Positions 24,244 to 51,224 of a DNA stretch of 64,000 bases are shown here, piece after piece. Source of the DNA: Ruditapes philippinarum (taxonomy: Eukaryota). The translations under genes were made by a program, and so were the position numbers. Every line of letters begins with the position of its first letter. Position 1 is the first letter of the stretch. The stretch covers positions 124,001 through 188,000 of the forward strand of contig NW_026857573.1 in assembly GCF_026571515.1 (NCBI RefSeq), written 5' to 3'. Below the pieces are notes generated by a model. The model worked only from the letters and a program-made list of their open reading frames with translations, was not told where the DNA came from and made no database searches.

Positions 24244-25771
24244 TTATCTGTATATTCTGTATTCAAACCCTCCAAAGTAAACATTATCTGGATGAGCGGT
24301 CACTTGAATAACAATGTCTCGTGCGAATGTTGCGTTAAAACAGGCTGAGATTTCTGTAAAAAAAGGTATGTAATGTAAAATAAAATTGACCCGCAAAAAG
24401 AATTCTTATATGAATTTATAGTGATAGTCAATTTGTTGAAAAACGTGTATAATGGTTCAGAAGACATTCCGCAGCGAAAATTTAGGTTGAAATCCTAAAC
24501 ATATCTTTTAGAAATGCTAACGAGTAACATTAATAGTCTACCTTTAATAATAATAATGATAATAATATCGTTATTGAAGGCAGGTATCATATGAAGATAT
24601 ACCATCGTAGAATTCAAAACAATATATAGAAACACAAAACATCATAAAACCATGACAATTATTCCATTAAGATTTTGCCCTATAACAAACAAAAATTGAT
24701 TTATTTTGTCAAACGCTTCTTTAAGATATTAAATAGCATAGGAATCATCAAAATTAATGATCCATACGTGATTCAGAATAAGGTGTAGCTTATAAATAAT
24801 GTGTTCTTGTTGAGGACAAACCAACAATGAAGTGAACACTAACAACAGTTTATGTTGTACTCGTTATGATGAAATTTGTGACAGACCTGATCCTGTTTGT
24901 CATAGTGACATATTATTTATACATCTTCATTTACAAATATTTTGACAATTCTACATGCATGATACAACATTTATGGCTATCGCGAAAATGTACATGCATA
25001 ATTTGCTTTCTTTTTAAAATATACTTACTATCATCAAATGGCCCCAGGCGTTCATTCGTAGCCTTTTCCGTTATATTGAAGAAATCGCCACATTGACTGT
25101 CTCTTATACAGATAGTTCTTCTCAGCTAGCGGGGTGAAAAAAATGACAGATTATATCCGAGAAAATAAAAAATGTATACTTAGTAATTATACAAATTCAT
25201 AAAGTCATACTATCAAGATTCATTTATTAAAAATGAGAACAAATTATTTCTTTTTTATATATATTGTCTAACATAAAATATTTTAATTATTTTAATACCT
25301 CTTTCACATTTTGAAAATGTAGCATGGTGTGTCCTTTGGGATAATGCCAGTTGAAAGTTCCATTGGTGCATTCTGCTGGAACATTAACAGTTGTTATGAA
25401 ATTGTCTGATTTGGGAATCCTTCAAAATAAAACAGGATAATACAGGTACTAATTTTGTCAAAAATATTGTTAAAATTGTCTGCTTTACATAATAATCAAC
25501 AGATGTTCATACATTCATTTTAAAATCGTATTCCTCTGAATTAAACTAAGTTTTTTTAAACATCAAAATACCAACGATGATATATTTCAATTTTCGAAGT
25601 AAACTATTTGTAATGAAGTATTTTTGATCAAAAACAATAAAATAGTTATATAATATATTCCAGAACTTACCCGTTAGTATATTTCGGACATACGTCACAT
25701 GGCTTATCACAGAAAAGTCCGCATGCGGAAAATACGCACATCAAGAAATAAATCAAAAAGATCATCATCAT
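24244..25771 (-). CDS. Small secreted meteorin-N-domain-like protein, copy A1 (4 exons, 142 aa, intact)
   Basis: Exons 25771-25671, 25419-25299, 25125-25029 and 24353-24244 are GT-AG with phases 2/0/1. Protein: MMMIFLIYFLMCVFSACG LFCDKPCDVCPKY..VPAECTNGTFNWHYPKGHTMLHF..ICIRD..ACF..IVIQVTAH..GFEYRIYR*. Confidence 0.85.
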
Positions 25772-25950
25772 TATTATGTGCTTTTTTACCAACAATAATG
25801 CTAAGCTGTTTTAAATCCGTTCTAAGTATTTGTATACAAATATAATAAGAACTATGAAGTGAAGTAAGTTATTTAAATTACGTTTTACTTTAAATGTGTA
25901 TATGAACTACGTCAGTACGATAAATGAAGGTATTCGCTCAAAACGTTTCT

Positions 25951-25961
25951 TTTTATATATA
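25951..25961 (-). promoter_or_regulatory. Candidate TATA box of gene A1
   Basis: TATATATAAAA on the minus strand ~180 bp upstream of the ATG, in a block conserved with 43516-43655. Confidence 0.55.
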
Positions 25962-26406
25962 GTCCGGTTTAACGGCCTTGTATAATTAACTCGTAAAAAT
26001 ACATAAAACAATGACAAATGACATCCTGTTTCATTTTCGCATATATTAGTTTTTTATAATCAACAATAAGGTCATTAACATGAAATGTAAATATTTAACT
26101 TTATTATATACCTATAAATTTTCTCCCTTAAATACACGCCGATATTGAAGCGCAAATACGTTTCATCGGATAGAAATTTCCGTATTATGTTAGTGACAAA
26201 TACGGTACCATATATGGAAGTGACGGACTATTTTTGACGTTGGTTCCGATCTTAGCTTTGTATAACGTTGCATTTGGAAACGGGAACCAAAATTATTAAA
26301 GGCGTGGCCAGTTTTCAAGAATTACGTATTCATCCGTCAGTCATGAATTTATTTCTTGACAACTACATTGCATTTTCTTAATAAAACGAAAATGTATATA
26401 ATAAAA

Positions 26407-26569
26407 GGAAAATTATGTTGTAGTAGCGTTCTGAGACTATGTATTTTTCTACTCGCAACGTTGGAAAATTGATATCTCGCTCGACCTTCGGTCTCGCGAG
26501 ATATCAATTTTCCACCGCTGCTCGTAGCAAAATACAAAGCCCCAGAAAGCTACTACAACATAATATTCC
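26407..26569. repeat. ~160-bp imperfect palindrome (foldback element) with a central TTCG-containing loop
   Basis: ggaaaattatgttgtagtagc...ggaaaattgatatctcgc-tcgaccttcggtctc-gcgagatatcaattttcc...gctactacaacataatattcc. Confidence 0.8.
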
Positions 26570-29500
26570 GTATTTATCGACCCTGTTGTTTAATTATTTC
26601 GTAAAAGTATTTCACAACAATATCACATATGAAATCCTGTACGATATCCGCGTATACATGTTTTTTTTCAAAATCAACTCGGAAATTTACATGAAATATA
26701 AATATTTAATGATTTTCATAGAAAAAGATAAGATCATAGAAAAAATAAGCATATGCAAATGAAATTTATATATAATATGATTTGTATTCTGTAACCAACA
26801 TAATACATAAGAATCACAAAATAATTTCAAGTTTTTCAATCAAACCATTTCCGTTGTGAGCCTACTGTTATTGATCTGACATTTTGATTATCATTTACAT
26901 TTAAAAGTCCATTATACCCTAGAAATGTTTTATCTTTATTTATAAAAAAAAATCTTATATATTCCAAAAATGTATAATAAATGGCCAATTACTTTAACAA
27001 TCGTTTTTTCTGTTGCTTTTTTTTTGGCAATTAGTACCCTTACTGTATAGTGATTTAGTATTTTGTATAGAATTTAAAAATCTACTTTGTTTACATTTTG
27101 GTACTTTTTATGAAATCTTTTTCATATTTAAGATAACAAACATTTAACATGTTCTTGAACAATTATTTAAATGTCATAAAATTCACATTTGCCCGATTAT
27201 AAAGAAGTCAAATTTATTTATTTAATGTTTCACCCATGCAAACCCTTGAACAACATATGTTATAATATTATCGACCAGTCATTGTGATTATTGATGATTA
27301 TTAGTTACCCAACGGTAAAGAGCGGCAAATATCAAACACTGTCTGATTAAGTCACGTCCATCCTTTCATTTCCCATAAATATCACTAACTACGTACGTTT
27401 TAGCTGTTGATTATATATTATTTTCACTGCACGCAGGTGTTTTAACCAATGTTTTCATTTATTTAATTGCAGATTGTTTTTGTTCCCTTTTTAGGGAATG
27501 TCTTTATTCTTGAAAAACAATATGAAATAATTTAATCCCTGAACGCTTTTGGAAGAAATCTATATATGGCATTTTGACTATTATTAGGTATACGCATAAT
27601 TAGGTATACGCATATATACGACAGAAATCGTAAATGACAGAAAACGTCGATCGCATACAATAGTGGTTTCCCATACATTTATAATTATGTGTGTTCTTTA
27701 TTTAATTGTTGGTTTATAAAAAAAGCTAATAACTTCAAAATATATGGAGGTTTTCGACATTTCATTTCAACAGTTTTTTTAACACATCATATTTTGTTAT
27801 TTAATGGTAACCTTTAAAACAAAATATTACATCTTGAATATCACAAAATGCTTAATAGCATGTCCATTGTTCTTGTTTTCACCAATCGAATCTGTTCGGC
27901 TTTTTTCGTCATACTTCAGCAAATAAAAAAATACCGAACACAATAGTTGGATATTGTTTATCGGTTTCACTTTAATAACAATAATTTAAACTGAAAACAT
28001 GCATATTTATTTGTTTGATATTGTTTACACATTTTGTAAATGCCAACAATAAGATTCAAATATAAACCTTCTTCATTTGTTAGTTATTATGATTTTAACC
28101 GCCGATAGTAAGAATGGAATAGCTAATGATGGATTTTACACATTCTTAGAAGAATAATTTTATAAGACACGTTGTCTTTCATTCGAATCCTGTTTTTTAA
28201 GTTTATTTGAATTTCTTTCTGTATATTGTTAATTGTAACATGTATATATATTCTGAGAAATAAAATATATCTAAACTAATGATGGTATTTAAGATTATTT
28301 TAGATTGATATTCTAGAGAACTGGTATTTCGAATTCTTTCTAAATGTCGCACAACGTTTCAATAAAAACACTTTATAACGAAATACATTTAGTTTTTGTC
28401 CATATGTGTACATGTAACTAATAACCTCTAGCTATCTAGTTCCAACAAGGTAACGAGGTGGTTATATGTAAATAGCGAGATATTACGAATGATGTTAATA
28501 CTGTTTTTATATTTCTGATGTTTTCATATTTTGTCATAAAATACTAAGTACTAGTATGTTGATCAGTTAATGCGCATTGCTCGTCCCACAGCAATTTTCT
28601 ACATGAATAATGTCTATGGCGGTTAGGCCATAAAATTATTGCATAATATCAAATGGTTCGACATTTTCACATCACATATGTTTACTCATAGTTATGTAAG
28701 AAGATGGCACATTTAACATTGAAACTATATACGGCAGTGTTGCCGGTTGTTAATATGAAAAGAAATCTTACGAATATATTAAGCAGCATATTGTGACGCG
28801 TTATGACCAAACTACAATATCTGACGTTTCATGAATCAACACCTATACATGTATAAGTATATGGGTTAGCTCCTTCTGGTTAAACAGTTATACCCCCTAA
28901 ACATTATATTACTGGAATAATTGGTTTTCGCATAACATGGATTACATCCACTGGTAAAATCTCTAACAATTCTGTTAACTTCGGGTAAGATGTAAAACAA
29001 GGTCTAGGTATTCCTATAATGACAGTTAAACTATTCTTAACCAATTGTATATATGCGTTTTATAACTTCACTTATTTTTTTGCATCAATTCTATATTGAG
29101 CATAATTTAGCGGTCTATTTGTGTGTCTGAAACATAAATCAAATAAACAATTCTGAGGAAACTGACAGCTGAAGTCATAGATAATTACATAAGCACGAGG
29201 AGAGAAAACAGTTATAATATTGCCAATAAATTGTGATTTATACATCAATTCTTGTCTTTTAGTTGAAATATTTCAATGTTCAAATGGCGTGTCTATTTTC
29301 AAAAGGAAGTAACTTTTATACTACATTTCTTTGCTAAAATCCGCCCAAACAGCGTCATATACCCAGTTAATTTCCAGAAGCTCTATTTATCTTTTAAACG
29401 GTGTATCACATGAAGTTTCTCTATGGAAAATATTCATCATTTTTGTATTGCTGATTACGTAATAATTTCATGGTATCGAAAGTAAAAAGCAAAACAAATT

Positions 29501-31188: not shown

Positions 31189-33236
31189 ATGCTGATCCAT
31201 TTGATTTGTTTCTACATTGGTGTGCTAACAGTTTCCGGATTTTTATACGATAATCCATGCGACGTATTTCCAAAGTATTCTGGCGGGTAAGTTCTGATAA
31301 TTAATAAGTAAAAACATTATCTACATACTTTGCAAAAAGGTAGCTTTGTGTTAATACCGACCAGTTTTAAAAATGATTGTGAGAATATATTTTTGCTTAA
31401 AACGGTGCAGAAGCATAATCTTATTAGTTTACTTCCAATTATACTTAATTGTCTGCACATTTTCGCCTAATTTATTTTGTTTCAGTTGACAAATGTGCTC
31501 TTTCAATATAAATTCTTAGAGTATTATTAATATTATTGTTTTAAAGCATCTCCAACTCAGACGATTTTACAACAACTGTAAACGTTCCAGCTAAATGCAA
31601 GAATGGGACATTCCGCTGGGACTATCCTAAAGGACATGCCATGCTCCATTTTCAAAATATGCAGGAGGTAACACTTTTTTCTAAATATAGTGAATCAAAG
31701 TAATACTTTTTTATAGGTATACGTAGCCAAAATAAAATTTTTGTACCATTATTTAGTTACATACACTTTTTTAAAAATCTTTTTTGTATCAAAAGACCTT
31801 ATAGTACTCAAATAAAAATTTGTCTATCGTACAATAAACAAAAAACAATTGAAAATTGAGAAGGAAAAAAACAGAAATATCTGAAGTCTGGCATTCTCCT
31901 TTAGAAATAATATGAATTATTATGAAATTTCATATTACTTTCCTTTCTTTTCTTTTTATTTAAAAATCATGCTATTCATATTATATTTATATCTAGATGG
32001 AAATTAAAATCTGTATAAAGGACAGAGTAGGTGGAACAGTTTTCAATGTGACTTAAAAAGCTACCAAACAACGTCTCGGAACTTTTGATTACGGTAAAAT
32101 TCATAAATTGTCTTACGAAGGGTGTGACATTGTCATTTCTTATTATGATTTTGTATGTATCACTTTCGATTGTTCCTTTGAATAAGACAATAATCGTGTT
32201 ATTACAAATAAATGACAATTACTATGCACCAACTGGTACCCATGAATATAGATGGTTCTATTTATTGTTGTGACTCTTACAACTGTTGCTACCATGAATA
32301 TATGTATCTTAATTGTGATGACTACGAATGTAGATCTGTAAACTATGATAACTATAAATACACTGTACAGTAGAACCCCTTCTTAAGACCACCCCGGAAT
32401 TAAGACCATCCCACTATTTAGACCATTTTTCAAAAGTACGAATTTTTTTCTGTTCTTTATGTCAATGGTTACATGATATAAGAATTAAGACCCCCTCGCT
32501 TATCCACTTTTAAGACCGCCAGATTCAGTCCCAATTCTTTGTTTTGTTCTTTATTTGATCCCACTATTGAGACCACTGATGTAAAGTCAACACCTACCAA
32601 GATATTAACTTTGTTGTTATGTTGTTATTATCTGCTTGAATGCTCTTAGGCATGACACTTAATTTCACAAGGTGTCAAAAACACCTTATATCATAGGAAT
32701 ATTTATGAAAATAGGTGAGAAAGTAAATTTTAGAGTGGTTTAATGTTGCTTTAAGCAAATTGATTATGCGAAGACATTATTTCCTTTTTGATTGCTGAAT
32801 TACGTACATCATATTATAATTAATATTGAAATCAGGCCAAATATAATTTGATATTTAATTTCTTTCGGCCCATCAGATGTTAAATTATAACATACTTTTA
32901 TGTTGTATTTGCAGGTAAAGATATATATTGTTTTTTCATACAAAATGACTAAAATAGAAAATGGTCAAAAAAGTGTAAAAGCATCGATAAGAATATTCAC
33001 AGTTAAGACCACCCCACAATTAACAGTCCCGATAGTGGTCTTAACTGTAGTTATTTTAATATGTGACCATAAATATATGTGTCTAAATGTATGATTATTC
33101 AGGGCTATGAATGTCATTTTTTTCAGAAACCTCAGCCTGTTTCCAACCAACATCAGAACGAGATATTGTTCTTCAGGTGGACGCTCCGTTAAGTCTTCGT
33201 TACATGGGAGAGTTCGAATACAGACTTTTCAATTGA
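31189..33236 (+). pseudogene. Meteorin-N-domain-like gene, copy B1 (4 exons, one in-frame stop)
   Basis: Exons 31189-31286, 31547-31667, 31997-32093 and 33127-33236, with all splice sites intact. TAA at 32054-32056 where paralogs have GAT/GAA. May be a null allele or a base error. Confidence 0.75.
32368..33047. mobile_element. Tc1/pogo(Tigger)-type non-autonomous DNA element in intron 3 of B1
   Basis: TA|CAGTAGAACCCC start, repeated TTAAGACCA(C) subterminal motifs, and an inverted ggtcttaactg|TA end. Absent from the corresponding B3 intron. Confidence 0.6.
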
Positions 33237-34554: not shown

Positions 34555-36073
34555 TCATTTGTAAATTCTGTATTCAAACATTTCCAGGTAGCGTCTTGAT
34601 GGATTGGCAGTCACCTGAAGAACGATGTCTCGTCCAGATGTTGTATTAAAACAGGCCAAGTTTTCTGAAAAATAAATGTCACCATCATGATATGGCCCAC
34701 AAATAGTAATTAATGTGTGTATTTATAGAAGTGGATATTATATTTCGCTTTGTAATATTTATGAAATTATTTAAACAAAATAATATTTAAACGAATATGA
34801 ATAAATGAGCATTAACTATTCATTTTGACACAAAATCTAGTTAAAATGTATTTTGAACTTTGAAATATGATAAATATGATATTTACCTTTGTCAAAGGTT
34901 CCTAGTCGCTGATTTGTAGCTGTGAACGTTATATTGTAGTCTGTATATGGACTAATATTTTTAATACAGATTCTTTTCATCTAAAAGGAAATAATTGTGG
35001 AACTTTTTAAGAAATGTTAGCAAACTTGCAAAGATATACTTTTTATAATTGTTGTTTTAAGTTATAATTCATGTTGATAAGGTTATATTTTTAGATAAGG
35101 AATTAGATTTATTTGTGTAAAACTGTGTAAAACTGAACGTAAATCAAATATAGGTCTATTTAAGTTATAAATATCCTACCTCTGTCACATTTTGAAAATG
35201 CATCATGGTGTGACCTGCAGGAGAATGCCAGCGGAATGTTCCATTCATGCATTCTTCTGGAACATTTACGGTTGTCGTAAAATTGTCAGATATGGGAATT
35301 CTTCTTTAAAAATAAGAAGGTAATTTTGTAACAAAATGACAATATATATATATGTTTTAAAAGAACAAATTGTCTACTTCATGTAATTTATCGCCAGTTG
35401 TTTATAAATTCATTTGTAAATAGTATTTTGTAAATGAAACTAAGTGCTGCAGCATCATGATGATTTTTACAAAATAATATTGTAATCATTGCCAGCATAG
35501 TGACAAATTGTGGTGCCAAACCAATAAGTATTTGGTGGAGAATCTATAAAAAATCATAACGTTTGCTATCTATTCAGATGAATCAGGTCTGCTGAAAGTT
35601 TTTTATCAAGACGTCTGAAAACTGATAATAAAAACATTTAAACATTGCGTAATATAAATAAAAAGAAACATTTAAGGGAAAGTCACCAGTCTCGTCCTTT
35701 CTTTTAATTTGAATTTGTTGCTTATTCTAAGGACAGATAATTCACATTGAAGGTGAACAATACATAATGTCGTTTGCTAATTATAGTCGCTGACTTCCTT
35801 TGTAGTCATTGTAAAAATGAAAGGAAACGATGCCCACGATTTCTGTACATTCTGTCTATGCAGGTAACTGTAACAAATTTTATTAAACATGAATATTTAA
35901 CAACAAAATATCTTAAATAAAAGATGCAGTCCAGTTATCAAAATTAAATAGACGCTCTTAAAGTGTATAACTTACCCGCCGGGATACTCCGGACATACTT
36001 CACATGGCTTTTCACAGAAAAGTCCGAAAACGGAAAACACGCACATCAAGAAATAAATAAAATTGATCAACAT
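34555..36073 (-). CDS. Small secreted meteorin-N-domain-like protein, copy A2 (4 exons, 140 aa, ORF intact)
   Basis: Exons 36073-35976, 35300-35180, 34980-34887 and 34664-34555. Protein: MLINFIYFLMCVFSVFG LFCEKPCEVCPEY..VPEECMNGTFRWHSPAGHTMMHF..ICIK..ACF..IVLQVTAN..MFEYRIYK*. Confidence 0.85.
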
Positions 36074-36254
36074 TATTTCCTATGTGTTATTTAAAAACAA
36101 TATTTATGCTAAAATGTGTTAAATACTGGGTAAGTACAATTTTTATTAATTGATATTTAAAACGATAACTGTAGCTAAACTATATTTTATAAATAATAAA
36201 TCACTAAAATTGCTTCATAAGTCTATACGCATTCAACACATTAAACATGAAAAC

Positions 36255-36466
36255 AAATCCATTCATTTACAGCTCGTCTTTAAATGAATGCAGTTATCTG
36301 GTCCCCATTAAAGGGAGAGAACTCGTCCGGTCTTGTTGCTTCAACCACGTGTTGTACGTGACGTCATAATTAAGTCTGATGTCATCGAGACCTTGCGCGT
36401 TTTCAATCCTTTTCCTCGAGGAATTCAAGCAGGAAGGTCGACATTTTGCTTTTTCTTACAAATTAA
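36255..36466 (+). repeat. Ngaro repeat A1 (212 bp)
   Basis: Identical by eye to 42491-42702. Confidence 0.95.
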
Positions 36467-36785
36467 TTTGAAATTGATTTAAGATTTATTTATTGAATAA
36501 GATTTCTTTCTACTTTTAATGGTAGATTAATATTGAATATCTACTAATTTCATAAATTATATGTTGATCTTGTTGTGTAGTGTAAATAACGATAATTATT
36601 GATACTTGATCAGCAGGAATGCTAGATATAAAACTACATGTTACAGTAGGTTTAGTCTGGAGGCTCTCTATCTATTAACGGAGATAAGATATATTCGACA
36701 TTGCATTTTCTTTTAGCCGCTAGATCTATATTGACTGATAGTTAATAATTTACTTATTAGATCTAATTTTTTATTTCTTGAGAAA

Positions 36786-38162
36786 ATGCCTCGGCCTAAG
36801 AGGAACTGTAAATCTACATGGAAGACGCGAGGGCAGACTAGGTCAGCCACAAGATCTAGAGGGAGACGGTCCCATCAGATTGAAGTCTCCATGCAACCCA
36901 TTGTAGAGCAGCCGGCTGTAGTTCAGTCTAATGCAACAACAACAAATTATGCAGCAGTAACTCAGGACCAAGGTCAAATCAATCAGTTCTATCACACTAA
37001 TCAGAACGATTATGTGAATACGTCATCTGTACAGAACCAATGTCATTACTCGTCACATACCCATGTCCCAGGGGTGTTGGGACAACAGTCGCTCTATCAT
37101 TCAAATTCAGTGAATACGTCATCTGTACAGAATCAAGGTCATTACTCGCAGCTGGCTAATTGTGTAGTACCAGCCTCAGTTGTACCAGTAACACATACCA
37201 ATGTCCCAGGGATGTTGGGACAACAGTCGCTTTATCCTTCAAATTCAATGCAAGTGCCATATACACAGCATTGTCAGGGAGCTGTTCCTTCAACGGCCTC
37301 GGTATCGGAAGGATTTGCTTCAACTTCACAAGGCTTGCAGATGTCTCCTGCTGGAGGAATGTTCGAGTCACCTGTGGTTGGGCAGCCCCCGATGGTACAT
37401 GAAACATCAGGTAATGAAAATGTTTTCAATTCGGTAGTAACTGATATGGCTTTGCATGTAAACGCTAGTACAAAAGAAAGAATATTGAGTGGAGAATTTG
37501 TTGATTTAACATGCTTATTAGAAAAAGATTCCTCCGCTCAAAGTAAAATCTTTAAAGTTGTAAATGGCGTACTAGTCTTGTCTGATAGTTCTAGATCTAT
37601 TAAACATACTGTTTTGTCAATTGAACAATGGACTGATGCCTTTTTAATATATATGAGTATTTTGATTGCAAAACACCCCGAATTAGCCATAGAATTGTTG
37701 CATTATTTAAACACAATACGATCTGCGTCAAAACTAAATCCGATTGGCTGGATAAAATATGACAAATTTTTCAGGTATAAAATGTCACAATATCCAAATA
37801 CAAAATGGTCAAATATTGATGCTGAGATATGGTTGGTAACTATGACGAATGTAAGCTCAAATCAATCAAACAAACAAAATCACTGCTATGAGTTCAACGG
37901 TAAAGGGTTTTGTTCAAAACCGGGTTGTCAGTACTTGCATAAATGTAAAAAATGTACCGGGCCGCATTCTGCTTTGCTTTGCAGATCACCTACACCAGGA
38001 TTTGTAAATGCTTATAGATCTAATAATAATCTCAGCCAAAATCATTTCAGACATCCCAGGTTTGAGCACTTCCCACAATTTGAAACTCCTAGAGCACCTT
38101 TGGGACCTAGGCAACACCCCAATAGATACTTTGCGTCTAGAAATGTGGCTCAAAGGTTATAA
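36786..38162 (+). CDS. Ngaro ORF1 gag-like protein (458 aa)
   Basis: Basic N-terminus, Q/S/N-rich internal repeats, KERILSGEFVDLTCLL..IEQWTDAFLIYMSI..W..YD..FR, and C-terminal CYEFN..C..C.Y.H.C..C..H zinc fingers typical of YR-retrotransposon gag. Confidence 0.88.
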   Translation: MPRPKRNCKSTWKTRGQTRSATRSRGRRSHQIEVSMQPIVEQPAVVQSNATTTNYAAVTQDQGQINQFYHTNQNDYVNTSSVQNQCHYSSHTHVPGVLGQQSLYHSNSVNTSSVQNQGHYSQLANCVVPASVVPVTHTNVPGMLGQQSLYPSNSMQVPYTQHCQGAVPSTASVSEGFASTSQGLQMSPAGGMFESPVVGQPPMVHETSGNENVFNSVVTDMALHVNASTKERILSGEFVDLTCLLEKDSSAQSKIFKVVNGVLVLSDSSRSIKHTVLSIEQWTDAFLIYMSILIAKHPELAIELLHYLNTIRSASKLNPIGWIKYDKFFRYKMSQYPNTKWSNIDAEIWLVTMTNVSSNQSNKQNHCYEFNGKGFCSKPGCQYLHKCKKCTGPHSALLCRSPTPGFVNAYRSNNNLSQNHFRHPRFEHFPQFETPRAPLGPRQHPNRYFASRNVAQRL

Positions 38163-39722
38163 TAAGGAGAATGCAAATTTTATATTACATGGATTCAGGG
38201 AGGGGTTTAGGCTGCAATACAGTGGTCCCCACTGCGAATTTACGGCAAAAAAAATCTGCAGTCTGCGATTAGATACCCGGAAATTTTAGCAAAAAAGCTT
38301 GAAAAGGAAGTACAATTAGGACGCTTTTTAGGTGCCTTTACAATTAAACCATTTGCAAACTTACGCATCAATCCAATTGGGCTAGTTCCCAAAAGTACAG
38401 GTGGAATGCGCCTAATAACTCATCTGTCATATCCTTATAATGGAACTAGTGTTAACGATTTTATTGATCGTGAAATAACTATGGTTCAATATTCCCGTTT
38501 TGACAATGTTATAAAAATAATACAGTGTTTAGGCCCTGGTGCACTTATGGGGAAAAGAGATGTTAAATCGGCCTTCAATCTCTGCCCTGTACACCCTGAC
38601 GATTTCGATTTATTAGGTGTCAAATTTGATGGCAAGTATTGGATTCAAAAAATGCTTCCGCAAGGGTGTTCAGTCAGCCCCGCCTATTTTGAAAAATTTT
38701 CAACATTCCTTCACTGGGCGGTTTCTCAATATGCAAACTCGTCAAACTTAGATCATTATTTAGATGATTTTTTCTTTGCCGGAAAAGCCGGCACAGAGGA
38801 TTGCACAAACCTCATGTTGGATTTTGAGTACATCTGTAAAGATATGAATATTCCTATAAATGAAGATAAATCAGAAGGCCCTAATACAATCATCACTTAT
38901 TTAGGCATAGAGATTGATTCTTTAAAGATGGAAATAAGAGTTCCCTTTGACAAAATAAATAAAGCAAAATCATTGCTATTAGATGCCTTGGTCAAACTTA
39001 AAATTAGATTAAGAGAACTGCAATCAATTCTTGGCATTTCAAATTTTTTCACGAAAGCAATACCAGCAGGTCGTACTTTTAACTGTAGATTATACGCTGC
39101 ACAGTGTCAGGCAAAGAGATCTTACCATATATTCGCTTGAATAAAGATCACAAGGAAGATATTAGAACTTGGCTGCAATTTCTTGATCATTTTAATGGTG
39201 TGTCTATATTCAGTGATCAATACTGGTCGTCAAATCATGACCTTGACCTTTATTCAGATGCTGCTGGTAACAGGCATTTAGGCTGTGGTGCTTACATGGA
39301 CGGGGAATGGATAATTTTTGAATGGCCGATGTTTTGGAGTAATGATGTATTTAAAGACATTACTCTTCTTGAACTAGTCCCTATTCTATTGGCCTTTTAC
39401 ACATGGGGATCAAAGCTTAAAGGAAAAAAGATTATCATCAATTGTGACAACATGAGTCTTGTGCAGATTCTTAACAAAAAAATCATCGCGAAATCTGAAA
39501 GTCATGATTCTGCTCCGAAAACTTGTTTTATTATTGCTTTATAACAATATACAAATAAAAGCAATTCACATCGTGTCGAAGAAAAATGATATATGTGACG
39601 CAATAAGTAGATTACAATTCCCTAGACTGCAGAATTGCTTGCCTGTAAATGCTAGCAGAACCCCTCTTTCTATCCCATTTGATTTTCAGCAATTTATCAA
39701 CACGAAATCATTCGACTGGTAA
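38008..39722 (+). CDS. Ngaro reverse transcriptase-RNase H, split into four ORF pieces by frameshifts near 38250, 39110 and 39480
   Basis: GFREGFRL, PIGLVPK..RLITHLSYP, DVKSAF, LPQGCSVSP, HYLDDFF, RNase H SDAAG / LELVPI / CDN / DAISR. Two of the breaks are at poly-A runs. Confidence 0.9.
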
Positions 39723-39724
39723 AC

Positions 39725-40562
39725 ATGTCTTTAAGTGAGAATACAAGCAAATGTTACAAGTCGGGATTAGAATCATTTAGAAAATTTAGAATTTTAATGC
39801 TCTGTCCGAGCGTTTGGCCACCCAGTCTAAATGAAATCGTAGAATATATAGCGTTCATGTCACATGGCGGATATGCATATAAAACGGTAAACTGTCACAT
39901 CGCTGCCATTAGCTATGTAAACAAAATGAATAATTTTCAAGACAATACTAAATTTTTCATAGTAAGAAAAATGTTAGAAGGAATGAACAGATTACAAAGT
40001 CGATCAGACTCTCGCAGGCCAATCACTTTGCACCTTCTTAAGCAAATTATACATAGCTTGGTGTTTATATGCATGTCCGATTATGAAGCATTACTTTTCA
40101 AAACAGCTTTTTTACTCGCATTTTTTTGGGTTAATGCGCGTGAGCGAAACTGCATTTCTCTGCAACGAAATTCAGTCAAATGATTCATTTGTTCAAATAC
40201 ACATAAAATCATCTAAAACAGATCAGATGGGTAAAGGTCAAACTATACGGGTAAATTTCGAGAGTGAAGACGCCGTGTTGCTCAAACATACCGGTACTTT
40301 AGAAAATTATAAAAGACAAAGACCTGCCGTTCAAGGTCAATATCTATGTCATGCAAATGGAAAGCCATTAACCCAATACCAGTTTAAGCATGTTTTACGC
40401 AAATGTCTAGAATATTTGGGACAACCTCTAAACATTTTTAAATCACAATCATTTAGAATGGGTGGAGCCACATACATGTTCAATAAAGGTATGTCTGAAT
40501 CAGCAATTAAGCAGGCTGGACGCTGGAAGTCAAATGTATATCAGTCTTACATAAGAGTATAA
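39725..40562 (+). CDS. Ngaro tyrosine recombinase (one frameshift at the T-run ~40120)
   Basis: AFLLAF(F)GLMRVSE, SKTDQ, SQSFRMGGAT (HxxR appears as QxxR), GRWKS..Y..YIR. Confidence 0.9.
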
Positions 40563-40576
40563 ACCAATCAACTTCA

Positions 40577-41176
40577 TTGTTAATTTTAGGTCCTCCCGAG
40601 GTATGGGTTATAGGGTCTTCGATTATCCGAGATGCCTACTATTATTCCATCGAAAACAAGGGTCACAACCTTGGATTGGATCTCAAAATAGTTTGGGATT
40701 TTAGGTCAGGTATGAAGGTTCAACATCTGGCAAACACCATACAGCACTTAGCACTGAAATATATGAAATACCCTGATATGCTTATCATTCACTGTGGTGG
40801 GAATGATATTGGACAGACACCCTTAAATGAGGCCGAGCTTTTAGCAATACGCACATTGAATGATGTACACCAGTTAGGTATTCAAAATGGGTTTTATATA
40901 AAGATTGTCTGGTCGCAAATTCTTCCACGTATGTTTTACCGTGGTGAACGTAGCCACTTTAAGTTGAACAAGGCACGAAGGCGCTTTAATACAACACTTC
41001 AATCATTTTGTAAAACAATTGGCGGTGCCTATATTCGACATCAAGACATAGTGGAAGCCCAGCCTCTTTTTCGGGATTTGGTTCATTTGTCAGAATTTGG
41101 TAATGAAATATTCACCAATGATTTAAAAGAGGGTATTGTCGCTATTTTGCGACATAACAGAGATTGCTACCCTTAA
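40577..41176 (+). CDS. Ngaro SGNH/GDSL hydrolase (esterase) ORF
   Basis: Blocks VWVIGSSI, SGMK, IHCGGNDIG and DLVHLS. There is no ATG upstream of the catalytic Ser, and the ORF is preceded by a splice-acceptor-like ttaattttag. Confidence 0.85.
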   Translation: MLILGPPEVWVIGSSIIRDAYYYSIENKGHNLGLDLKIVWDFRSGMKVQHLANTIQHLALKYMKYPDMLIIHCGGNDIGQTPLNEAELLAIRTLNDVHQLGIQNGFYIKIVWSQILPRMFYRGERSHFKLNKARRRFNTTLQSFCKTIGGAYIRHQDIVEAQPLFRDLVHLSEFGNEIFTNDLKEGIVAILRHNRDCYP

Positions 41177-42162
41177 GAATAAAAATAATTGATATCATGA
41201 ATTATTAACAAGTCTGTAAACTCTGGTAGGAGATTAGTGGTGACCGAATTCCGGCATCATTTATTAATAATAATTCTTTGTTTATGTTGTGATAGACGCC
41301 GCTATGATAATAATGGTCGAGATGATGCAAATATGAATAATAAAAATAATAATAAATGAATTCATATGACAGAAAACTAGAATATAATCTATTTAACATG
41401 CAGACGACCTTCTTGCTTGGAATCTTTAATGTAACTCAAAAATAGACAGATACAAATTTAAAGAATAAGCAATTGTCATTTATGAAGCTCGAATTAAGAA
41501 CTTGATACTAGTAGATAGAATATGCGTACTATCGGTGGCAAAAAACCTGACATTAGCTCTTCGTCTCATACGTAGACTCCGCATGATACTTTCAACATAG
41601 TATATTAAGTATATAGCATATAGTTTTGCATTAACTTATTATCGGCGACCGAGTTCCGGCAATTAATCCACGATATTAATATTTCATTAATATAATTTCA
41701 AAACTTTACCGAATTCCGGTAATATCTCCGATGTCCGGAGAAAGATACATATTTGTATATGCAGTATAAATACAATTTTATCAGTTGGCGATTTACGTCG
41801 TTAGAAATTCAGGCGTCCGAAGAGACAATTGAATGTCCAAATATTCCGGCGCTGTTGATCGAAGTCCGATCTAGTTACCGATATCCGGAACAAGTTGAAA
41901 TGAATATATATATCTATACAGATTGTTTATGGGATGTGCCATTGATCGCAATACTGCGGGCCTCCCTACAATTATCGGCGTCCGAATTCCGGGGCCACCT
42001 CCGATATCCGGAGTACACACAAGTTTTTCCAAAACAAAAAATTGGGGGGTCCTTACGTATCTGTAGGGGGCCTTTATGTACATTTTTGGCATTTTTGTCG
42101 TTGATAAGACGCTACTCCTTGGCAGGGCTTGGTCCTACGACGCAGTCTTGTCCCGGCGCTTT

Positions 42163-42492
42163 GGCATTCTAGCGCACTTATCAAGTAACATATTCATGTG
42201 TTTAAAGAAGCATTCGGCATTGTTCTTGATTGGTATTTATATTACAAACCTTTCTTTTGGCATATTGGAAATCGCAATCAAAGTTATATTGAACATATTT
42301 TGTATAATATATATTATTGCATGTGCAATGCGTTTTTGTTACAAGTCAGTCATGGCCAAGTAACTGCCATCCTTTTATAAATAGATAATATTGCTAATTA
42401 TATAATTATTCATTTAAGGTTATATGTTCTGAATAGAATACCATATATAAATATATATTGTGTTAGTTTTTTCTCACAGGGTGAACAGATAA
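42163..42492 (+). repeat. Ngaro repeat B1 (330 bp)
   Basis: Identical by eye to 43186-43515. Confidence 0.95.
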
Positions 42493-42702
42493 ATCCATTC
42501 ATTTACAGCTCGTCTTTAAATGAATGCAGTTATCTGGTCCCCATTAAAGGGAGAGAACTCGTCCGGTCTTGTTGCTTCAACCACGTGTTGTACGTGACGT
42601 CATAATTAAGTCTGATGTCATCGAGACCTTGCGCGTTTTCAATCCTTTTCCTCGAGGAATTCAAGCAGGAAGGTCGACATTTTGCTTTTTCTTACAAATT
42701 AA
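42491..42702 (+). repeat. Ngaro repeat A2
   Basis: Copy of 36255-36466, directly abutting B1. Confidence 0.95.
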
Positions 42703-43185
42703 CCCTCCCAAACCCTACCCTTGTAGAAAGATTTATTGATTATATATTTGGAAGAGTTGCTTCGTTTGTTTCTTTGTATATTTTCAGCATAAACTGCTCA
42801 CTAGATCAATTGATATGCTATCTTAGCCATTGATACACCTTAATGATCTACGTCATGACTGGCTGATGGGAAGAACCTTAACACTGAAAAATCACTGGAC
42901 AAGACTTGTGTGTGGTATGACAGTATAGTGATGTGACTTAATGTGATTTAACAGGAACCAAGATTCATTAATTCTGTTGAAAGAATAAAGTGTTCATGTT
43001 GAAGAAATTATGACATAGATTGATTTAGATCTACATTTGATATTATGATAAAGAACAAAAGAAATGTATTTGTGACTTGTGTGAAAATAAGAAATTGTGA
43101 ATGTGATTTAAACTAACATTTATGAAAAGATAACAAGGTTCTTTCCATAATTAATAATTGATTATATTGCATTTTATTATGATAC

Positions 43186-43515
43186 GGCATTCTAGCGCAC
43201 TTATCAAGTAACATATTCATGTGTTTAAAGAAGCATTCGGCATTGTTCTTGATTGGTATTTATATTACAAACCTTTCTTTTGGCATATTGGAAATCGCAA
43301 TCAAAGTTATATTGAACATATTTTGTATAATATATATTATTGCATGTGCAATGCGTTTTTGTTACAAGTCAGTCATGGCCAAGTAACTGCCATCCTTTTA
43401 TAAATAGATAATATTGCTAATTATATAATTATTCATTTAAGGTTATATGTTCTGAATAGAATACCATATATAAATATATATTGTGTTAGTTTTTTCTCAC
43501 AGGGTGAACAGATAA
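43186..43515 (+). repeat. Ngaro repeat B2 (right terminus)
   Basis: Copy of 42163-42492. Confidence 0.95.
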
Positions 43516-43655
43516 CTAATGTTAAAGAATTCGCTGAAAATGTGTCTTATATATAATTTCGACCTTATAATCGACCTTGTATTTAATTACTTCGTAAAAA
43601 CAACCGAAAACAACAACTTAATTTAACAAATGACATCCTGTATCATATCCGCCTT
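43516..43655 (-). promoter_or_regulatory. Displaced core promoter (TATA at 43547-43556) of gene A2
   Basis: Homologous to 25920-26040 upstream of A1 (attcgct.aaaa.gt.tct.tatatata..ccttgtat..tcgtaaaaa..acaaatgacatcctgt.tcat). Confidence 0.6.
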
Positions 43656-43993
43656 GAACATAATGTTAAATCAACAGGACATTGACGTGAAAGAAAAATA
43701 ATAAGTAAATTATGCGAAAAGAATAACTTAATTTTTGCAAAATCTACAATTAGGAAATTGACGTGAGATATAAATACATGTGGATTCTTTTTACTTTATT
43801 TGTATGTGTGTTGTTTTTTTTGCTTGTTTGTGGTTTTTAAGTTTATTTTTTACATTTAATTACTTTTTCTTTCAGAGAAAAATAACGAAATAAAGCTGTC
43901 GAGTTTTTATCTCATAAATGATATATGCAAAAATACATTTACCGTTACTTGACCTATGTTGAGTATGTAATAAACACGTAAATTCATAAAGTA

Positions 43994-44590
43994 ACGTTGA
44001 TCAAACTCATTTGTTTTTCATTTGATGTGGTAACATTTTCCGGTTTGTGTACAATAACCAATACGACGTATTTCCAAAGTATTCTGGCGGATAAGTTCTG
44101 ACATTTAATAGGTTAAGCTTGAAACTAACAATTGTGATAATTTATTCACATGTACAAATTTATTTTATGATCCCATAGGTTTCAAGAAAGCTTCAGACAT
44201 TCTTTTTATCTTTTATAGATAGTAGTAAATTGACTTTACTTGCATGTTTATAGTGCATTTTTTGTCCGAATGGTTACGAAGAACGTGACTCCTTATTTCA
44301 TCTCTTATAAGTTAAATTTGTTCAAGTCAGTGCCGCGAGCATATATCACGATAGCCATACTCAAACGGAGTCTAAAATTTTCACCTTTGTAGTTTAGATA
44401 ACTAGCCATATTGCATATCTATACAAATGTATCTAATTCAATATGTATTCTGTAATTAGTAATAAATTTATTTTTTAAAAGCAAACCCTTTTCGAAAAGT
44501 TGCTGAACATCTGTAAAGTTCCAGTATTGAGCATTCGCTGGAACTATCCTAAAGGTCATGCCCTACTCTAGTTTGAAAGTATAACATAGG
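43994..44590 (+). pseudogene. Meteorin-N-domain-like relic B2 (exons 1-2 only)
   Basis: Start codon ATG->ACG, a frameshift, and donor GT->AT after gacgtatttccaaagtattctggcgg. Decayed exon 2 (ttcgctggaactatcctaaaggtcatgcc). No exons 3-4 found. Confidence 0.8.
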
Positions 44591-46634
44591 AAATATACTA
44601 CTTTCTATGCAAAAATAATTAAAGTATTTTTTTCGTTTTTTAATATATTTCAATAAAAAATCTCCTCCATTTATGCATGAAAAAAAACCTTTTTACTCAC
44701 AAATTGATAATGTTTATGATGTAAAAGTCAAAGAAGAATTAACCATATTGTGTCGTTCTACTCTAATGAATGATAAATATTCCATATTTGATATAGAATT
44801 AGAAATTCATATAATTAATCAATTTTGTATAAAGAAAAAAAAGAAAATAACGACCGCTAAATCGTCCCACACGTTAATATAGTAATTAGAACCTTCACTT
44901 TGCGTGTTCTTAATGAATCACGGTCTCGAGACCTTGTTCATAACAATCTAAAACAGTCATAAATGACATACTTTACTATATCCGCATTGATAGTTTTAAT
45001 TACGTGAACTATGCATATTTTATATAGAAATAATAATAAGCAAAAAAGTAAACGCAAATGTAATCATGTGTATTTTGTATGTTAAAATAATAAAATGATT
45101 TTTGAGATTTTTTATATTAAAGGGAAAGGCAATGTAAAAATGAAAAATTATTATCAGAAAAAGCATACTATAAATAGTAAACATGCAAATTTTCTGCGTT
45201 CAAATAATGATAGTAAATGCTTTATAAATAGATTTAAATTGCTTAATCACCGATTTCTACAAAGCAGTAGGCACAACCATGTTTGTGTATTGGTCGCGTA
45301 AGACGTTGTTCGCCCGCATATTCACCCGCATATTTAGATTTGCGGTAATTATCGAATCGCCGCGAAAGACAACCTGCAAATCATTTCTGAATTATTAAAA
45401 TAGTATTTCTAATATTATTGGCTGAATATTTGGATATAGTTTACTTTCTTATTAATCTTTCAAGCCAGCAAATCCCTGAACAGGAAAGGTTAATAATTTG
45501 ATCGACTACCACTGATGATAATGAGATACACAATCTAAGATATTACTGCAATTCTCTTGATATTGAAAGTGGTAGGAAAAAGTAAACTTTGTTCTCATAA
45601 CGTGAAATCCGAAAATCACTTCTAGTTATGTTTCCCAATTTATTGTGACCAAGAAACAGATTTGTTGTTTATAATGCTACGAGCAGAAATAAGTGCAAAT
45701 ATTGCCATCCTTTTTATATTTGTAAATCGCGAAATGTATTTTATATGCCAATAAACCTGAAACTGGTAAAAAAAACATCCAACACATTTCTAATAAATAC
45801 AAGCTTTCAGAAGACAAAAATACATATATTTTAAAAGGACACAGGTGTTTTATTAATGCTTTCATATATTTAATAGATATCGTTATTTTTTTCTACAGCA
45901 AATGTGTTCCATTCTAGAAAGTGCTAGGTAATTAGAGCTATATTTATAAACATACGACAGTAAAAGACAATTGCCAAGAAGAAATTATTATTTTAAGATT
46001 TCTAATTCTGGACAATTGGCAATTAGAAATGATATACGTATATATAGCAGACAATATCGATTGCCAGTTCAGAGGCTTGCAAGAATATGAGTTCTCTCAT
46101 GTTAAGTTTTAAGCCTTCAAACTGCTGAAAAGAACATCACCACTTTAAATTTCAAAACAAGTTCACTACTGCTCTTTATTGGTGGCATTTGCATTGGTTC
46201 TTTGAAAACCGCATTCATTTAAAAAAAAAAGCTTCCAATAAACAACATGTGTAAGTATCATGTTTTTACCTACCGCAACGCTTTTGCCTTTTTGCCTTTC
46301 CTGTCATTCTTCAACACTAGGATACACTGAATAGATAAGGTATTTCGATTTCGCTTTAGCGATGAAAACAAGATATTCCTAATTATTTGACATTGTTCAA
46401 ACATTCTATTTTTATATATCGTGTTAGGCGTGGACGGTAACTTGCACTTTACCGTCCATGAAGTGGCTCAATGAAACTGAGCATGTAACATTTTCAGTTT
46501 TGGTCGTTTCGTGCGTACCTTATCTATTTTATATTTTTCAAAGATATGATATTTATTTGCTTATAATTCGGCTTTTATAAGCCAAAAGTATGAATGACAG
46601 TAAACTGTTGTTAACGATATTGTTGTGAAATTTT

Positions 46635-46893
46635 AACTTCGTGAATTCACGTTTTCAACATACGGAGTTCATAAATTCACGATTTCAACTTCGTGCATCA
46701 TGATTAAAACTTCACAAATTCATCTTCGTGAAGTCACGATTTCAACTTTACGAATTCAAAATTGCAACTTCTTGAATTCGCGATTTCGACTTCACGAATT
46801 CAACTCTACAAATTTATTATTTCAGCTTCTTGAATTCACGATTTGACGATTTCAACTTCATGAATTTTACGATTTTATCTTCACGAATTCAAC
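46635..46893. repeat. Degenerate ~22-bp minisatellite (AACTTCGTGAATTCACGATTTC)n
   Basis: Roughly a dozen imperfect units. The consensus contains the palindrome CGTGAATTCACG. Confidence 0.8.
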
Positions 46894-47289
46894 TGATACA
46901 TTATATTCTTAAAATTAGGCAAAAGTCTTTCACAGTAATATCAGCTTCATGTAAGCTGATATCAAAGACCCTTTTTGACAAAAAAATAATGATAGCTACG
47001 CGACGTGTGTTCTTTGTGTTTACATGCGTTGAAAGATTCTATTTGTTTACTTTTAATTGTTATCATTGTTATGTAAATTATTATTCAAAGTATGCTTTAT
47101 TACTATGACAATTGGTTAATCACACAGTATTGAAAATAAAATGCGAAAAAAGGATATAAATACCGTACAAATCAAATGAAGAAGGGAATATAAATGTTAG
47201 ATATACAGCTTCACCGTTATTCGTTATGTATTTATAAGCGCTTCCAATGTTTTTGCCACGACTTTGCCGTAATTTTGTCATTTGGCTGT

Positions 47290-47540
47290 CTTTTAATTCA
47301 CACCGACACTACTGGGGCAGGTCATACGGCGACTTGCTAGCTTTAGTTGTGGAGGAAAACCTAATGTTCCCTTCAGTGCAATATTTCAAGCATCTGGCAC
47401 CTGAGTGAAAACCGTCGACCTTCCGAAAGTTAATGAAAGAACACAAAGACCCTGGTGGAATTCTGACTCACAGTCGTGACAGACAAGATGTTCAGTGACG
47501 GAAAAGAGGCTCAAAATAGCGACCTTAACCACCGGGTTGC
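47290..47540 (-). mobile_element. Degenerate tRNA-derived SINE
   Basis: caccgacac..aggtcatacggcgact..gtggaggaaaacc..gcacctg..gaccttccg..gcgaccttaaccac. The right end reads as a decayed A-box/B-box head on the minus strand. Confidence 0.6.
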
Positions 47541-48355
47541 AGAATGTTTAAAAATCTGCCGGTTAGCAAACTTGCATGTCTTGTCTGTATTTTCAATTAT
47601 AGTTTTAATCGTAACTCAGAAACTATATGAAATTTTAGACATAAGAGAACATTCTAATTAAGCTTAGTGGATATTATTATGTTATAAAATGACGTTTTCC
47701 CTATCATTGCTGTAAATGTATGAGAATGTCAAATGTCTTATTAGAGTCTGATATTTAACGATCTATGCTATAATTTATATCGGCAATTATGAATACTTTA
47801 AATATTTGAAACCTGCCGGCGAATGATATTTTTTTTCAAAAACCATTAAACACACAGTCCCACATTAAAGTAAGACTGTTAAAATGCAACTATAGTATAT
47901 AAAGGCATTCATGATGTTTTGATATAAATACCCTTAGGAATCAAACCACAATGTGATTGGATCGAGTTGTTGATTAATGGTTTATGTCGGTGTTAATTCT
48001 CTTACAAAACAATACATTACAAAATTTTATTCGTCATTAAACATACACACATGTTTACAGCAAATACAAACAAAGCTGTTTAGTGACAAACATGTCAAAA
48101 GAAATGAAATTGTAAACGAATTTTTTTCCGAAGAGAGTATATAGTTCTTAGAAAATCATTAGTAACTATTAGTAAGTATATCCTGAAAGTCCTAATTTAA
48201 ATCAAAATATTTAGAATGTGATTAAAACAAGTAAGTATTTAAAGGTCACAGTTTTTATGATAAAAATTGCCTTATCTGTATACATATATAATGTTTACAT
48301 CGTATCTAACCATTCTTTGTCTTAAACTGAGTTTGAAAATAATCCGTGGACAGTG

Positions 48356-51224
48356 ATGATTAAATTTGTTTGTTTTTACCTTTGTGTATTCACCGTTTCC
48401 GGGTTTTTGTACGATAATCCGTGCGACGTATTTCCAAAGTATTCTGGCGGGTAAGTTTTTGTAAGTTTTGCTTGAAGGTAATTATAACATTCTTTTGTCA
48501 AAAAAAAAACAGCTAATGTTCCAATGGAATATATTTAGCTTTATTTAATTATACCCATGAAATATGGTGCTATATCAGTCAAATATATTTCATATTTTTG
48601 AAAAAATAAAATATGAAATATAAATATGAAAGTGGGCGGAGTCAAAACTCATATTTTTTAAGGGACTTCTTTCGCAATTTTGTTTAAAAAATCTGATAAA
48701 TAAAAAACAACTTTGTGTTATATTTTGGTTTGAAAACTATCTAGAATGATAGAAAATGGTCTAAGAAAATAAATCTGAAAACCAATATCTTTAATTAAGT
48801 CATTAACGCTGTACAGACGTTTAAAAAGTTGTTTACGTGAGTCACAATGTAGCCCGATCATCGCGTGCAAAACAAGACGCATCTATTAATAATAAATTTA
48901 TTACTGCGCGCTGTACAATTGCAGCTGCGTGGCAAGCAAAGCGATTTGTAATTAAATTAAATAAAAAGGTTATTTTTTCGTTTTTAGTGAAATATGGTGT
49001 ACATTTTCAATATGATAAAATGCCACACATTTTGGCTGAATTTGTTGTTTTAAGCATATAGTGCAAACCCTAATAGAAACAAACGTGGTTTTTCAATTTA
49101 TTGCCAGATATTTAACATCAGTGATGATATGTATAAGTGTTCTTAATGATAACCTATGCCAAAATATTCAGTACTGACACTCGGATATTGTTTAACATGA
49201 TTCGTAAACCATTATTTCTCATTTTCACCTACTTAATTTTTTCATTGCAGCCGTGGGATCTCCAATTTTACGTAGTTTTTAGAATATTTACTGAATTAAG
49301 TTAACATGTTGACATCCTATATCTAAAACCTATACTTTTAACATTTATATCTTTTTCTAAATTTTTGATCTCATATTAGTTTCTATTTTGTAGCATTCCC
49401 AGCTACAACAATTTCACAACAACTGTAAACGTTCCAGCTAAATGCAAGAATGGGACATTCCGCTGGGACTATCCTAAAGGTCACGCCATGCTGCATTTCC
49501 AAAATATGCACGGGGTAAATATAGTCAATTCTAAGTTTTATAGTCAATGTGAAGAACTTTCAATATTCATACCAAAGATATACATCAAGAAAAAGGTCCA
49601 CAGTTTACAGTACGACCTTTTAGCATACATTGATAAAATGACTTGAGAAGATAACATTTGGAAAAAGAAACATATTTATTCTGGTCCTTATTTTCGTGTA
49701 AATAATTTGAAATTTTATCTTTTTTCACTTGTAAAAGAATAAAACATTTTTATATTTTCACATTTTATTTCGTTTTTGTATTTAGATGGAAATGAAAATA
49801 TGCATAAAGGACAGCTTAGGTGGAACATTCTTCAATGTTACAGATAAAGCTACTAACGAACGTCTAGGACCTTTTGATTACGGTAAATCTACTTTTCAAT
49901 AATTTGTTTTATCAGGGAAAATCAGTCTAGATCAAATTCAGGAAAAATCTTATATATCAAGTGTAATTGTTTCACTTAGCATAATCGTGTTTTTGTTATA
50001 TATTTTATTTGTGATTAAAGGTCATCTGATATTGCAGTGACAATGCATGTAAAAATCTGGAAAAGGGGGTGGTCCTTCCGAAGCACTGAAAACAACAAAA
50101 TTACATTAAAAATGTATAGTCACTAGATTACGTGCGGCTATTAATTAAAGCCCTCGTAATTATGTGGCTGTCAATAAAAAACACCTTATTATCGGTCAAG
50201 CAAATTATATCACTTATTGCTGTGACTATAAATGTGGGTAATTAAATTTCGTGACTATTACTATTTGTCCTACTTATAGATTTTATTGTATATACTAGTA
50301 CATGGCCATTGTTTATGTTATACAATATTGTAAATTAGAACATAAGTTACCCTACCTTATGTTGTGTTTTACTAATAATGGTTACTTGTCGTTTTACTAC
50401 AAATATTTGTTGAGTTTAAAGTCACAACGGCCTAGATAAGTATAACGAATTTTCTAGAAAGATCTTACTTGTCTATGCTTATTTTCTTTTTACTTTTGTG
50501 ACACAAGCAGGTACAAACTATTGACCCTCTATAAATTTGCTGGATAGCTTCCTAAAATGACCAATTCAAAGTCCCTCGGGATTTTTTATATAAAGCTGAG
50601 TGATTTAAAGTTGAGTTGACAGATATATGAATGAAGTTATAGTGTTTCTTCGAATATGTGTTATGTAATCTTGTTTCTATGGGTACATGGATGTATGTCA
50701 TTTTGATTTTTACAAATATATGTTATAAAATGTTGTGTCTATGAATGTGTGTTTTATATAGTGGTAATTCTATGACTGTGTGTAAAAGAATGTTGTTTAA
50801 ATATTTTATATAATGTCACATAAAGAAATCTTGTTTTACGAATGCATGTGAAGACTATTTCAAATTATATTTTGTACACTTGTACATTTTTACAGTTTTG
50901 CCTCTACGAATATATTTTATATATAAAGTGTTTTTTTTCTATGAATTTATGTTAAATATTATTGTTTCTACAAATATAGATTATATCATGTTTCTACGAA
51001 GATATGATTCATTATGTTGTTTCTAACAATAAAGAATATAAATTGATATCTTTCACACAAGAACAGTCACAAACAGACCACACTTGTTTTAACCCTTTTA
51101 AGCATGTCTTTCAGAAACCTATGCGTGTCTGCAACCAACATCTGAACGAGAAGTTGTTCTCCAAGTGGATGCTCCGCTGGACCTTCGTTACATGGGAGAG
51201 TTTGAATACAGAATTTATAAATGA
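48356..51224 (+). CDS. Small secreted meteorin-N-domain-like protein, copy B3 (4 exons, 140 aa, intact)
   Basis: Exons 48356-48450, 49394-49514, 49786-49882 and 51115-51224. Protein: MIKFVCFYLCVFTVSG FLYDNPCDVFPKY..VPAKCKNGTFRWDYPKGHAMLHF..ICIKD..ACLQ..VVLQVDAP..GEFEYRIYK*. Confidence 0.87.

Follow-up and report, generated by a model that had tools for sequence, protein, structure and literature searches.

A 64,000-nucleotide stretch of the genome of the clam Ruditapes philippinarum (positions 124,001 to 188,000 of the forward strand of contig NW_026857573.1, assembly GCF_026571515.1; the contig is called C6060 here and the whole stretch the window, whose own numbering is used unless a contig position is named) contained five paralogous loci between positions 24244 and 51224. 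They encode small, predicted secreted proteins, whose single domain is probably a distant homolog of the CUB-type domain at the N-terminus of meteorin and meteorin-like (METRNL). The window is AT-rich eukaryotic DNA with a GC content of about 0.30; its run of N at 2007-2141 was excluded from the analysis. The copies, named A1, B1, A2, B2 and B3 in their order along the window, were located by six-frame motif scans followed by blastn of copy against copy, and the splice sites were then read by hand. This manual reading gave an exon plan of four exons joined across GT-AG introns in phases 2, 0 and 1. The similarity between the paralogs was beyond chance, with exon-level E-values of 1e-15 to 1e-25 (1e-18 to 1e-25 in tblastn for A1).

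Three of the five copies (A1, A2 and B3) were intact, with products of 140-142 amino acids. A1 was located on the minus strand at 24244-25771 (exons 25671-25771, 25299-25419, 25029-25125 and 24244-24353) and encoded 142 amino acids, while A2 on the minus strand at 34555-36073 (exons 35976-36073, 35180-35300, 34887-34980 and 34555-34664) and B3 on the plus strand at 48356-51224 (exons 48356-48450, 49394-49514, 49786-49882 and 51115-51224) each encoded 140 amino acids. B1, on the plus strand at 31189-33236 (exons 31189-31286, 31547-31667, 31997-32093 and 33127-33236), kept the exon plan, but the sequence itself shows an in-frame TAA in its exon 3 (32054-32056), and owing to this stop B1 is probably a pseudogene or a null allele. 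The last copy, B2, was a dead fragment on the plus strand at about 43997-44583, which consisted of an exon-1-like piece (about 43997-44091) without ATG and with its donor site lost, and an exon-2-like piece (44480-44583) holding stops. B1 and A2 were arranged tail to tail with 1.3 kb between them. The first-pass annotation of this DNA had described five paralogs on one exon plan with outer coordinates identical to ours, and had counted four complete copies; the four-exon plan in phases 2/0/1 was present in A1, A2, B1 and B3 as described, but the stop in B1 reduced the number of intact genes to three.

The products started with a hydrophobic N-terminus of 16-17 residues, and the mature part that follows has about 14 kDa (about 124 amino acids). 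N-x-S/T sequons numbered 3-6 in the intact copies and 2-6 across the products; models of A1 and B1 with their exons joined were used for these counts and for the ratios of nonsynonymous to synonymous substitution rates (dN/dS) given below. Four cysteines were common to every copy and were invariant or nearly so in an alignment of 44 relatives. The A type had two more, and the A1 product contained nine cysteines in total, with two extra ones in its N-terminal segment. In every copy the stop codon followed directly after the last strand of the domain. Products of about 140 amino acids with a signal peptide, sequons and four conserved cysteines had been expected from the first reading of the sequence, and the gene models agreed with it.

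Searches with the window genes were run per exon and also with the proteins P0001 and P0006, which represent joined B3 and A2. P0001 (NCBI LOC132750200), retrieved when the 88-codon open frame surrounding exon 2 of B3 was used in a word search, was identical to the B3 model letter for letter, and P0006 (NCBI LOC132750197 isoform X2) was identical to the A2 model in the same way. At least B3 and A2 are labelled by NCBI as uncharacterized proteins. Because the NCBI models match B3 and A2, the genes were missed solely by a prokaryote-style list of open reading frames, and the earlier description of the family as hidden was correct for that list but overstated with respect to RefSeq, which holds these models, and to UniRef, in which three relatives are automatically named "CUB domain-containing protein".

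Transcripts were checked over positions 48000-52000 using the contigs of three runs, each of a different study, together with the raw RNA reads of a fourth run. The junctions predicted for B3 were borne by spliced transcript contigs. The GT..AG joint of intron 1 (48449/49393) was found in contigs of two runs and that of intron 2 (49513/49785) also in transcript contigs, so that both introns were supported by runs X2 and X3, and the joint of exon 3 with exon 4 was seen in a variant copy in run X4. A transcript contig of 1 kb ran unspliced from exon 4 to past 52000, with nothing spliced on after the stop. The raw RNA reads of run X23 barely covered the exons, at a depth too low to gauge the expression level.

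B3 also possessed an alternative terminal exon, exon 4b, on the plus strand at 51705-51816, a second copy of exon 4 that brings its own stop. Run X2 showed it spliced to exon 3 across a GT..AG joint (49881->51705) with a depth of 103. In the window exon 4b was out of frame due to one extra base at 51777, and the reads of runs X2 and X4 without this base restored the frame; the extra base may be a polymorphism, an assembly error or a sign that the reads derived from a paralog. An exon equivalent to 4b is used by P0002, a paralog in module I of the array described below. Separately, a repeat at 48536-49071 within intron 1 of B3 showed high RNA read depth in run X23. Since its reads continued into unlike sequence, this is a dispersed repeat that is transcribed and does not belong to B3.

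The whole 1.41-Gb assembly was searched with an exon-2 profile and then with a profile of 44 sequences, and family loci were found on contig C6060 and in one other place, contig C721, only. On C6060 about 13 family copies were present between 9.8 and 175 kb of the contig, in three modules. The five loci of the window formed one module, and the module at 10-46 kb was an inverted copy of it: the order A1(-), B1(+), A2(-), B2 fragment(+), B3(+) recurred inverted at 10-46 kb and in part at 102-121 kb. The gene on C721 (218329-221570, plus strand) was a single divergent member outside the array, in which introns 1 and 3 had unchanged phases, intron 2 was missing and the frame stopped right after the domain; its orthologs in Mya arenaria were P0019 and P0072. 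The family is thus larger than the five copies initially described, all five of which were present in the window.

When 1.84 billion representative sequences were searched with a hidden Markov model (HMM) of the family, 66 clusters reached E<=1e-3, and almost all had a length of 130-150 amino acids. All 31 named relatives (31/31) were from bivalves or gastropods, and relatives of about 140 amino acids were present in more than 20 mollusc species, including the genera Mercenaria, Mya, Mactra, Dreissena, Crassostrea, Argopecten, Mizuhopecten, Lottia, Littorina, Pomacea, Lymnaea, Biomphalaria, Physella, Elysia and Bradybaena as well as unionids. Most were labelled uncharacterized or hypothetical, and two UniRef relatives other than the three mentioned above had other automatic domain names. 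Cys, Trp and Tyr residues were invariant across the bivalve and gastropod relatives. In a maximum-likelihood tree the gastropods formed a group with support of 89/85, which is under the cut-off of the tool, and the bivalve rows were unresolved. All Ruditapes copies fell into one clade beside Mercenaria, and therefore the expansion was local.

Four long bacterial proteins among the HMM matches (P0023, P0031, P0047 and P0067) were rejected as sums of weak repeats and not relatives. Two proteins, P0007 from Mya arenaria (200 amino acids) and P0026 (236 amino acids), contained two family domains in tandem, and are either gene models fused across neighbouring copies or true two-domain proteins. In the ESM Atlas, P0001 and P0062 led to a cluster of hypothetical proteins of 153 amino acids, mostly from Rotifera, with a language-model feature score of 0.95-0.97. 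This cluster suggests, as a lead only, that the stand-alone family may reach beyond molluscs.

The identity of the domain was analysed with profile searches against 177,635 distinct PDB sequences, for which a gastropod-only and a bivalve-only set sharing no sequences were used in addition to the all-mollusc set. With the all-mollusc profile of 44 sequences, 7tl6, the murine meteorin N-terminal CUB domain, was the sole significant PDB match (E 1.7e-4), and it was also at the top with the gastropod-only profile (E 8.6e-4) and the bivalve-only profile (E 0.014). A likeness to the N-terminal CUB-like domain of meteorin/METRNL had been proposed from a parallel in motifs, and this likeness was supported here by profile and structure searches alike. 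The HMMER alignment to 7tl6 paired the first three cysteines and the W-x-Y-P-x-G block, so that the signature C-x-x-G-x-x-x-W-x-Y-P-x-G is shared and, of the four cysteines, three or more have the same position; the fourth cysteine falls in the part aligned structurally only. A PDB search with exon 2 alone or with the C721 piece gave no match, and single exons and full-length proteins had no meaningful match in a copy of Pfam predating the meteorin family PF27640.

Structural analysis gave the same relative. The AlphaFold model of B3 had a predicted local distance difference test score of 93.2 and a predicted template modelling score of 0.82, with an N-terminal helix at residues 2-17 followed by one all-β domain at 20-140. 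Foldseek with this model placed 7tl6 first (E 1.7e-5), and meteorin was at rank 1 in four structure searches, at an identity of 16-17% versus 5-10% for the other matches. In the predicted models, the domain showed the canonical β-sandwich fold of CUB domains and agreed in fold with the solved N-terminal domain of meteorin along its entire length. Among the Atlas's own models, the nearest structural neighbours after the cluster of the family itself were Meteorin_N (PF27640) families with template modelling (TM) scores of 0.62-0.66, from arthropods (318 and 339 amino acids) and chordates (275 amino acids, some with NTR). Homology to the meteorin N-terminal domain was the common result of the three sequence profiles, of two models built independently and of the models of the Atlas. 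The results supported a match that spans the whole mature protein and ends where the CUB domain of meteorin ends, with the NTR domain absent. On this basis we consider it likely that each mature protein is distantly homologous to the CUB-type N-terminal domain of meteorin/METRNL, and that these proteins constitute a stand-alone family without NTR that has expanded in Ruditapes. The NTR domain, one defining feature of the meteorin family, is absent, and the proteins are therefore classified not as meteorin but as a stand-alone family of their own with this type of domain.

Several observations weigh against this assignment. The sequence signal was modest (22-25 bits), with the HMMER alignment spanning the first half of the domain only, the identity to 7tl6 was just 16-17%, and the structural margin over other β-sandwich or CUB folds was about 2 Z units. 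The Atlas, which carries Pfam 38.1 annotation, gave the mollusc cluster no common Pfam family, for which reason the curated PF27640 model probably does not reach the mollusc proteins, and the Atlas feature search placed CUB_2, CUB and CRF-BP clusters before the meteorin clusters, all with scores below 0.9. Of the copies in the window, moreover, one was broken (B1) and one was dead (B2).

Some of these points would also fit a divergent stand-alone CUB-like β-sandwich that is no closer to meteorin than to other CUB domains, with the shared motif arising by convergence or chance. TM scores of merely 0.48-0.66, the end of the HMM alignment midway through the domain and the three automatic names in UniRef favored such an origin. 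However, no canonical CUB chain in the PDB appeared at E<=10 with any of the three profiles, each of which put meteorin first, and Pfam CUB (PF00431) matched 0 of 44 members at E<=1 and likewise none of the window exons and full-length proteins. As three cysteines and the W-x-Y-P-x-G block are aligned and meteorin consistently ranks first, at a higher identity than the other matches, this origin appears unlikely, although it is the most serious of the alternatives.

The array was also analysed for signs of selection and decay. Between older paralogs (A versus B, and B1 versus B3) dN/dS was 0.2-0.45, indicating purifying selection, and between recent duplicates it was 0.2-0.9. The nucleotide identity between modules was 93-99%, and the modules go back to a recent duplication of the segment or, for some part, to haplotypes that were not collapsed. 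A retroelement of 7.26 kb on the plus strand (36257-43513), with repeated ends, a reverse transcriptase, a tyrosine recombinase and a GDSL-like ORF (Pfam matches RVT_1 and Phage_integrase), was inserted 183 bp upstream of the start codon of A2. It was absent upstream of the A2 copy of module I, where the alignment extended to 36256-35973 and resumed at 43854-43514. The stop in B1, the B2 fragment, the frameshifted exon 4b, this insertion, the dN/dS of 0.55-0.9 between recent module duplicates and the possible haplotype origin of the near-identical modules would be compatible with decaying duplicated DNA, either pseudogenes or assembly duplicates of haplotypes, without a current role. This explanation is very unlikely considering the three intact copies with perfect splice sites, the spliced transcripts, the low dN/dS between older paralogs and the conservation of Cys, Trp and Tyr from bivalves to gastropods.

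That longer genes start with these four-exon units and gain an NTR or another domain by splicing to distant exons is hardly conceivable: exon 3 of B3 can indeed skip exon 4 and join 51705, but the exon there merely duplicates exon 4 and has its own stop, the 1-kb transcript contig continued unspliced past 52000, every copy including the C721 gene (the only locus that the family profile found elsewhere in the genome) stopped right after the last strand, the tail-to-tail ends of B1 and A2 were separated by just 1.3 kb, and the NCBI models and the relatives in more than 20 species had 130-150 amino acids. The NTR domain that a full-length meteorin would have was thus seen neither in the copies nor in the contigs, the NCBI models or the relatives, and the family profile found no longer relative in this genome. 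The first-pass annotation had also placed the end of the proteins at the point where the NTR would begin, and the frames ended there.

Compared with meteorin and METRNL (METRN, METRNL/IL-41; PDB 7TL6, which dates from 2023; PF27640 in Pfam 38.1), the clam proteins lack the C-terminal NTR domain and the hinge, and their mature length is about 124 amino acids versus about 270. They further differ in the conserved N-G-T sequon inside the signature, and in their tandem arrays of many copies, in contrast to one or two meteorin genes, and they occur in molluscs, whereas meteorins have been described as confined to chordates (PMC12316458). Canonical CUB domains, such as those of MASP, neuropilin, enteropeptidase and PCPE-1, share the β-sandwich fold and four cysteines with the clam family, and PCPE-1, like meteorin, pairs CUB with NTR. 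The spermadhesins (AQN-1, PSP-I/II; 1SPP) resemble the clam family in having a signal peptide, a single secreted CUB-fold domain and clustered paralogs. This likeness is one of architecture and not of descent, the sequence relationship being undetectable, and spermadhesins are confined to mammals.

Beyond what is shown above on the structure and splicing of the genes, on purifying selection and on the fold of the domain and its nearest relative, the role of the proteins can be predicted from their architecture. Each would consist of a signal peptide and one β-sandwich domain and nothing more, forming an N-glycosylated, secreted protein of about 14 kDa, whose four conserved cysteines probably form two disulfides. 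Such a protein is predicted to act as a soluble binding or ligand module outside the cell, as stand-alone CUB proteins such as the spermadhesins do. The local and fast-diverging expansion suggests a role at a rapidly changing interface, for example in immunity, reproduction, or mucus or shell. The cytokine- or pheromone-like function proposed in the first-pass annotation went further than the evidence.

The family genes were flanked by genes of another kind. An intronless aminergic-type G-protein-coupled receptor (GPCR) outside the family was encoded on the plus strand at 20099-21070 (Pfam 7tm_1, E 3e-28; best PDB matches the beta-1 adrenergic and 5-HT4 receptors), and a second paralog on the minus strand at 53908-54918 (Pfam 7tm_1, E 1e-19), with 84% identity between the two over 263 amino acids. 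Seven such intronless paralogs interleaved the array, two in the window and the others at 5.4, 34.7, 52.8, 97.7 and 123.0 kb of C6060, and their best PDB matches were beta-1 adrenergic, 5-HT4 and TAAR receptors. This interleaving is of interest because vertebrate meteorin is reported to bind the serotonin receptor HTR2B, according to the mention of Dai et al. 2022 in PMC12316458, although it may merely reflect segmental duplication. A complex prediction for mature B3 with the neighbouring GPCR had a score of 0.01, which counts neither for nor against an interaction. It is conceivable, at a low probability, that the stand-alone domain is the ancestral form of meteorin before its fusion, retained and multiplied in molluscs and perhaps rotifers, and that in the clam its products serve as diffusible ligands or modulators of the seven interleaved orphan receptors, an idea that echoes the reported binding of HTR2B.

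Meteorin and meteorin-like (IL-41) have been studied as neurotrophic, metabolic and immune signals. METRNL is described in reviews as CUB plus NTR (PMC13359822). Meteorin genes were not found in invertebrates except amphioxus and tunicates according to a 2025 eLife paper (PMC12316458), and IL-41 has been listed among the interleukins with invertebrate homologs (PMC8226699). A literature search with the locus names and for an NTR-less family found no paper mentioning these mollusc loci or such a family. A mollusc-wide family consisting only of the meteorin N-terminal domain would make this domain older than chordates, and would show that it folds, and presumably acts, without the NTR half. Such a family would offer a naturally reduced form with which to study the binding partners of the CUB half, and would provide a structural identity for dozens of "uncharacterized" secreted mollusc proteins in fast-evolving tandem arrays.

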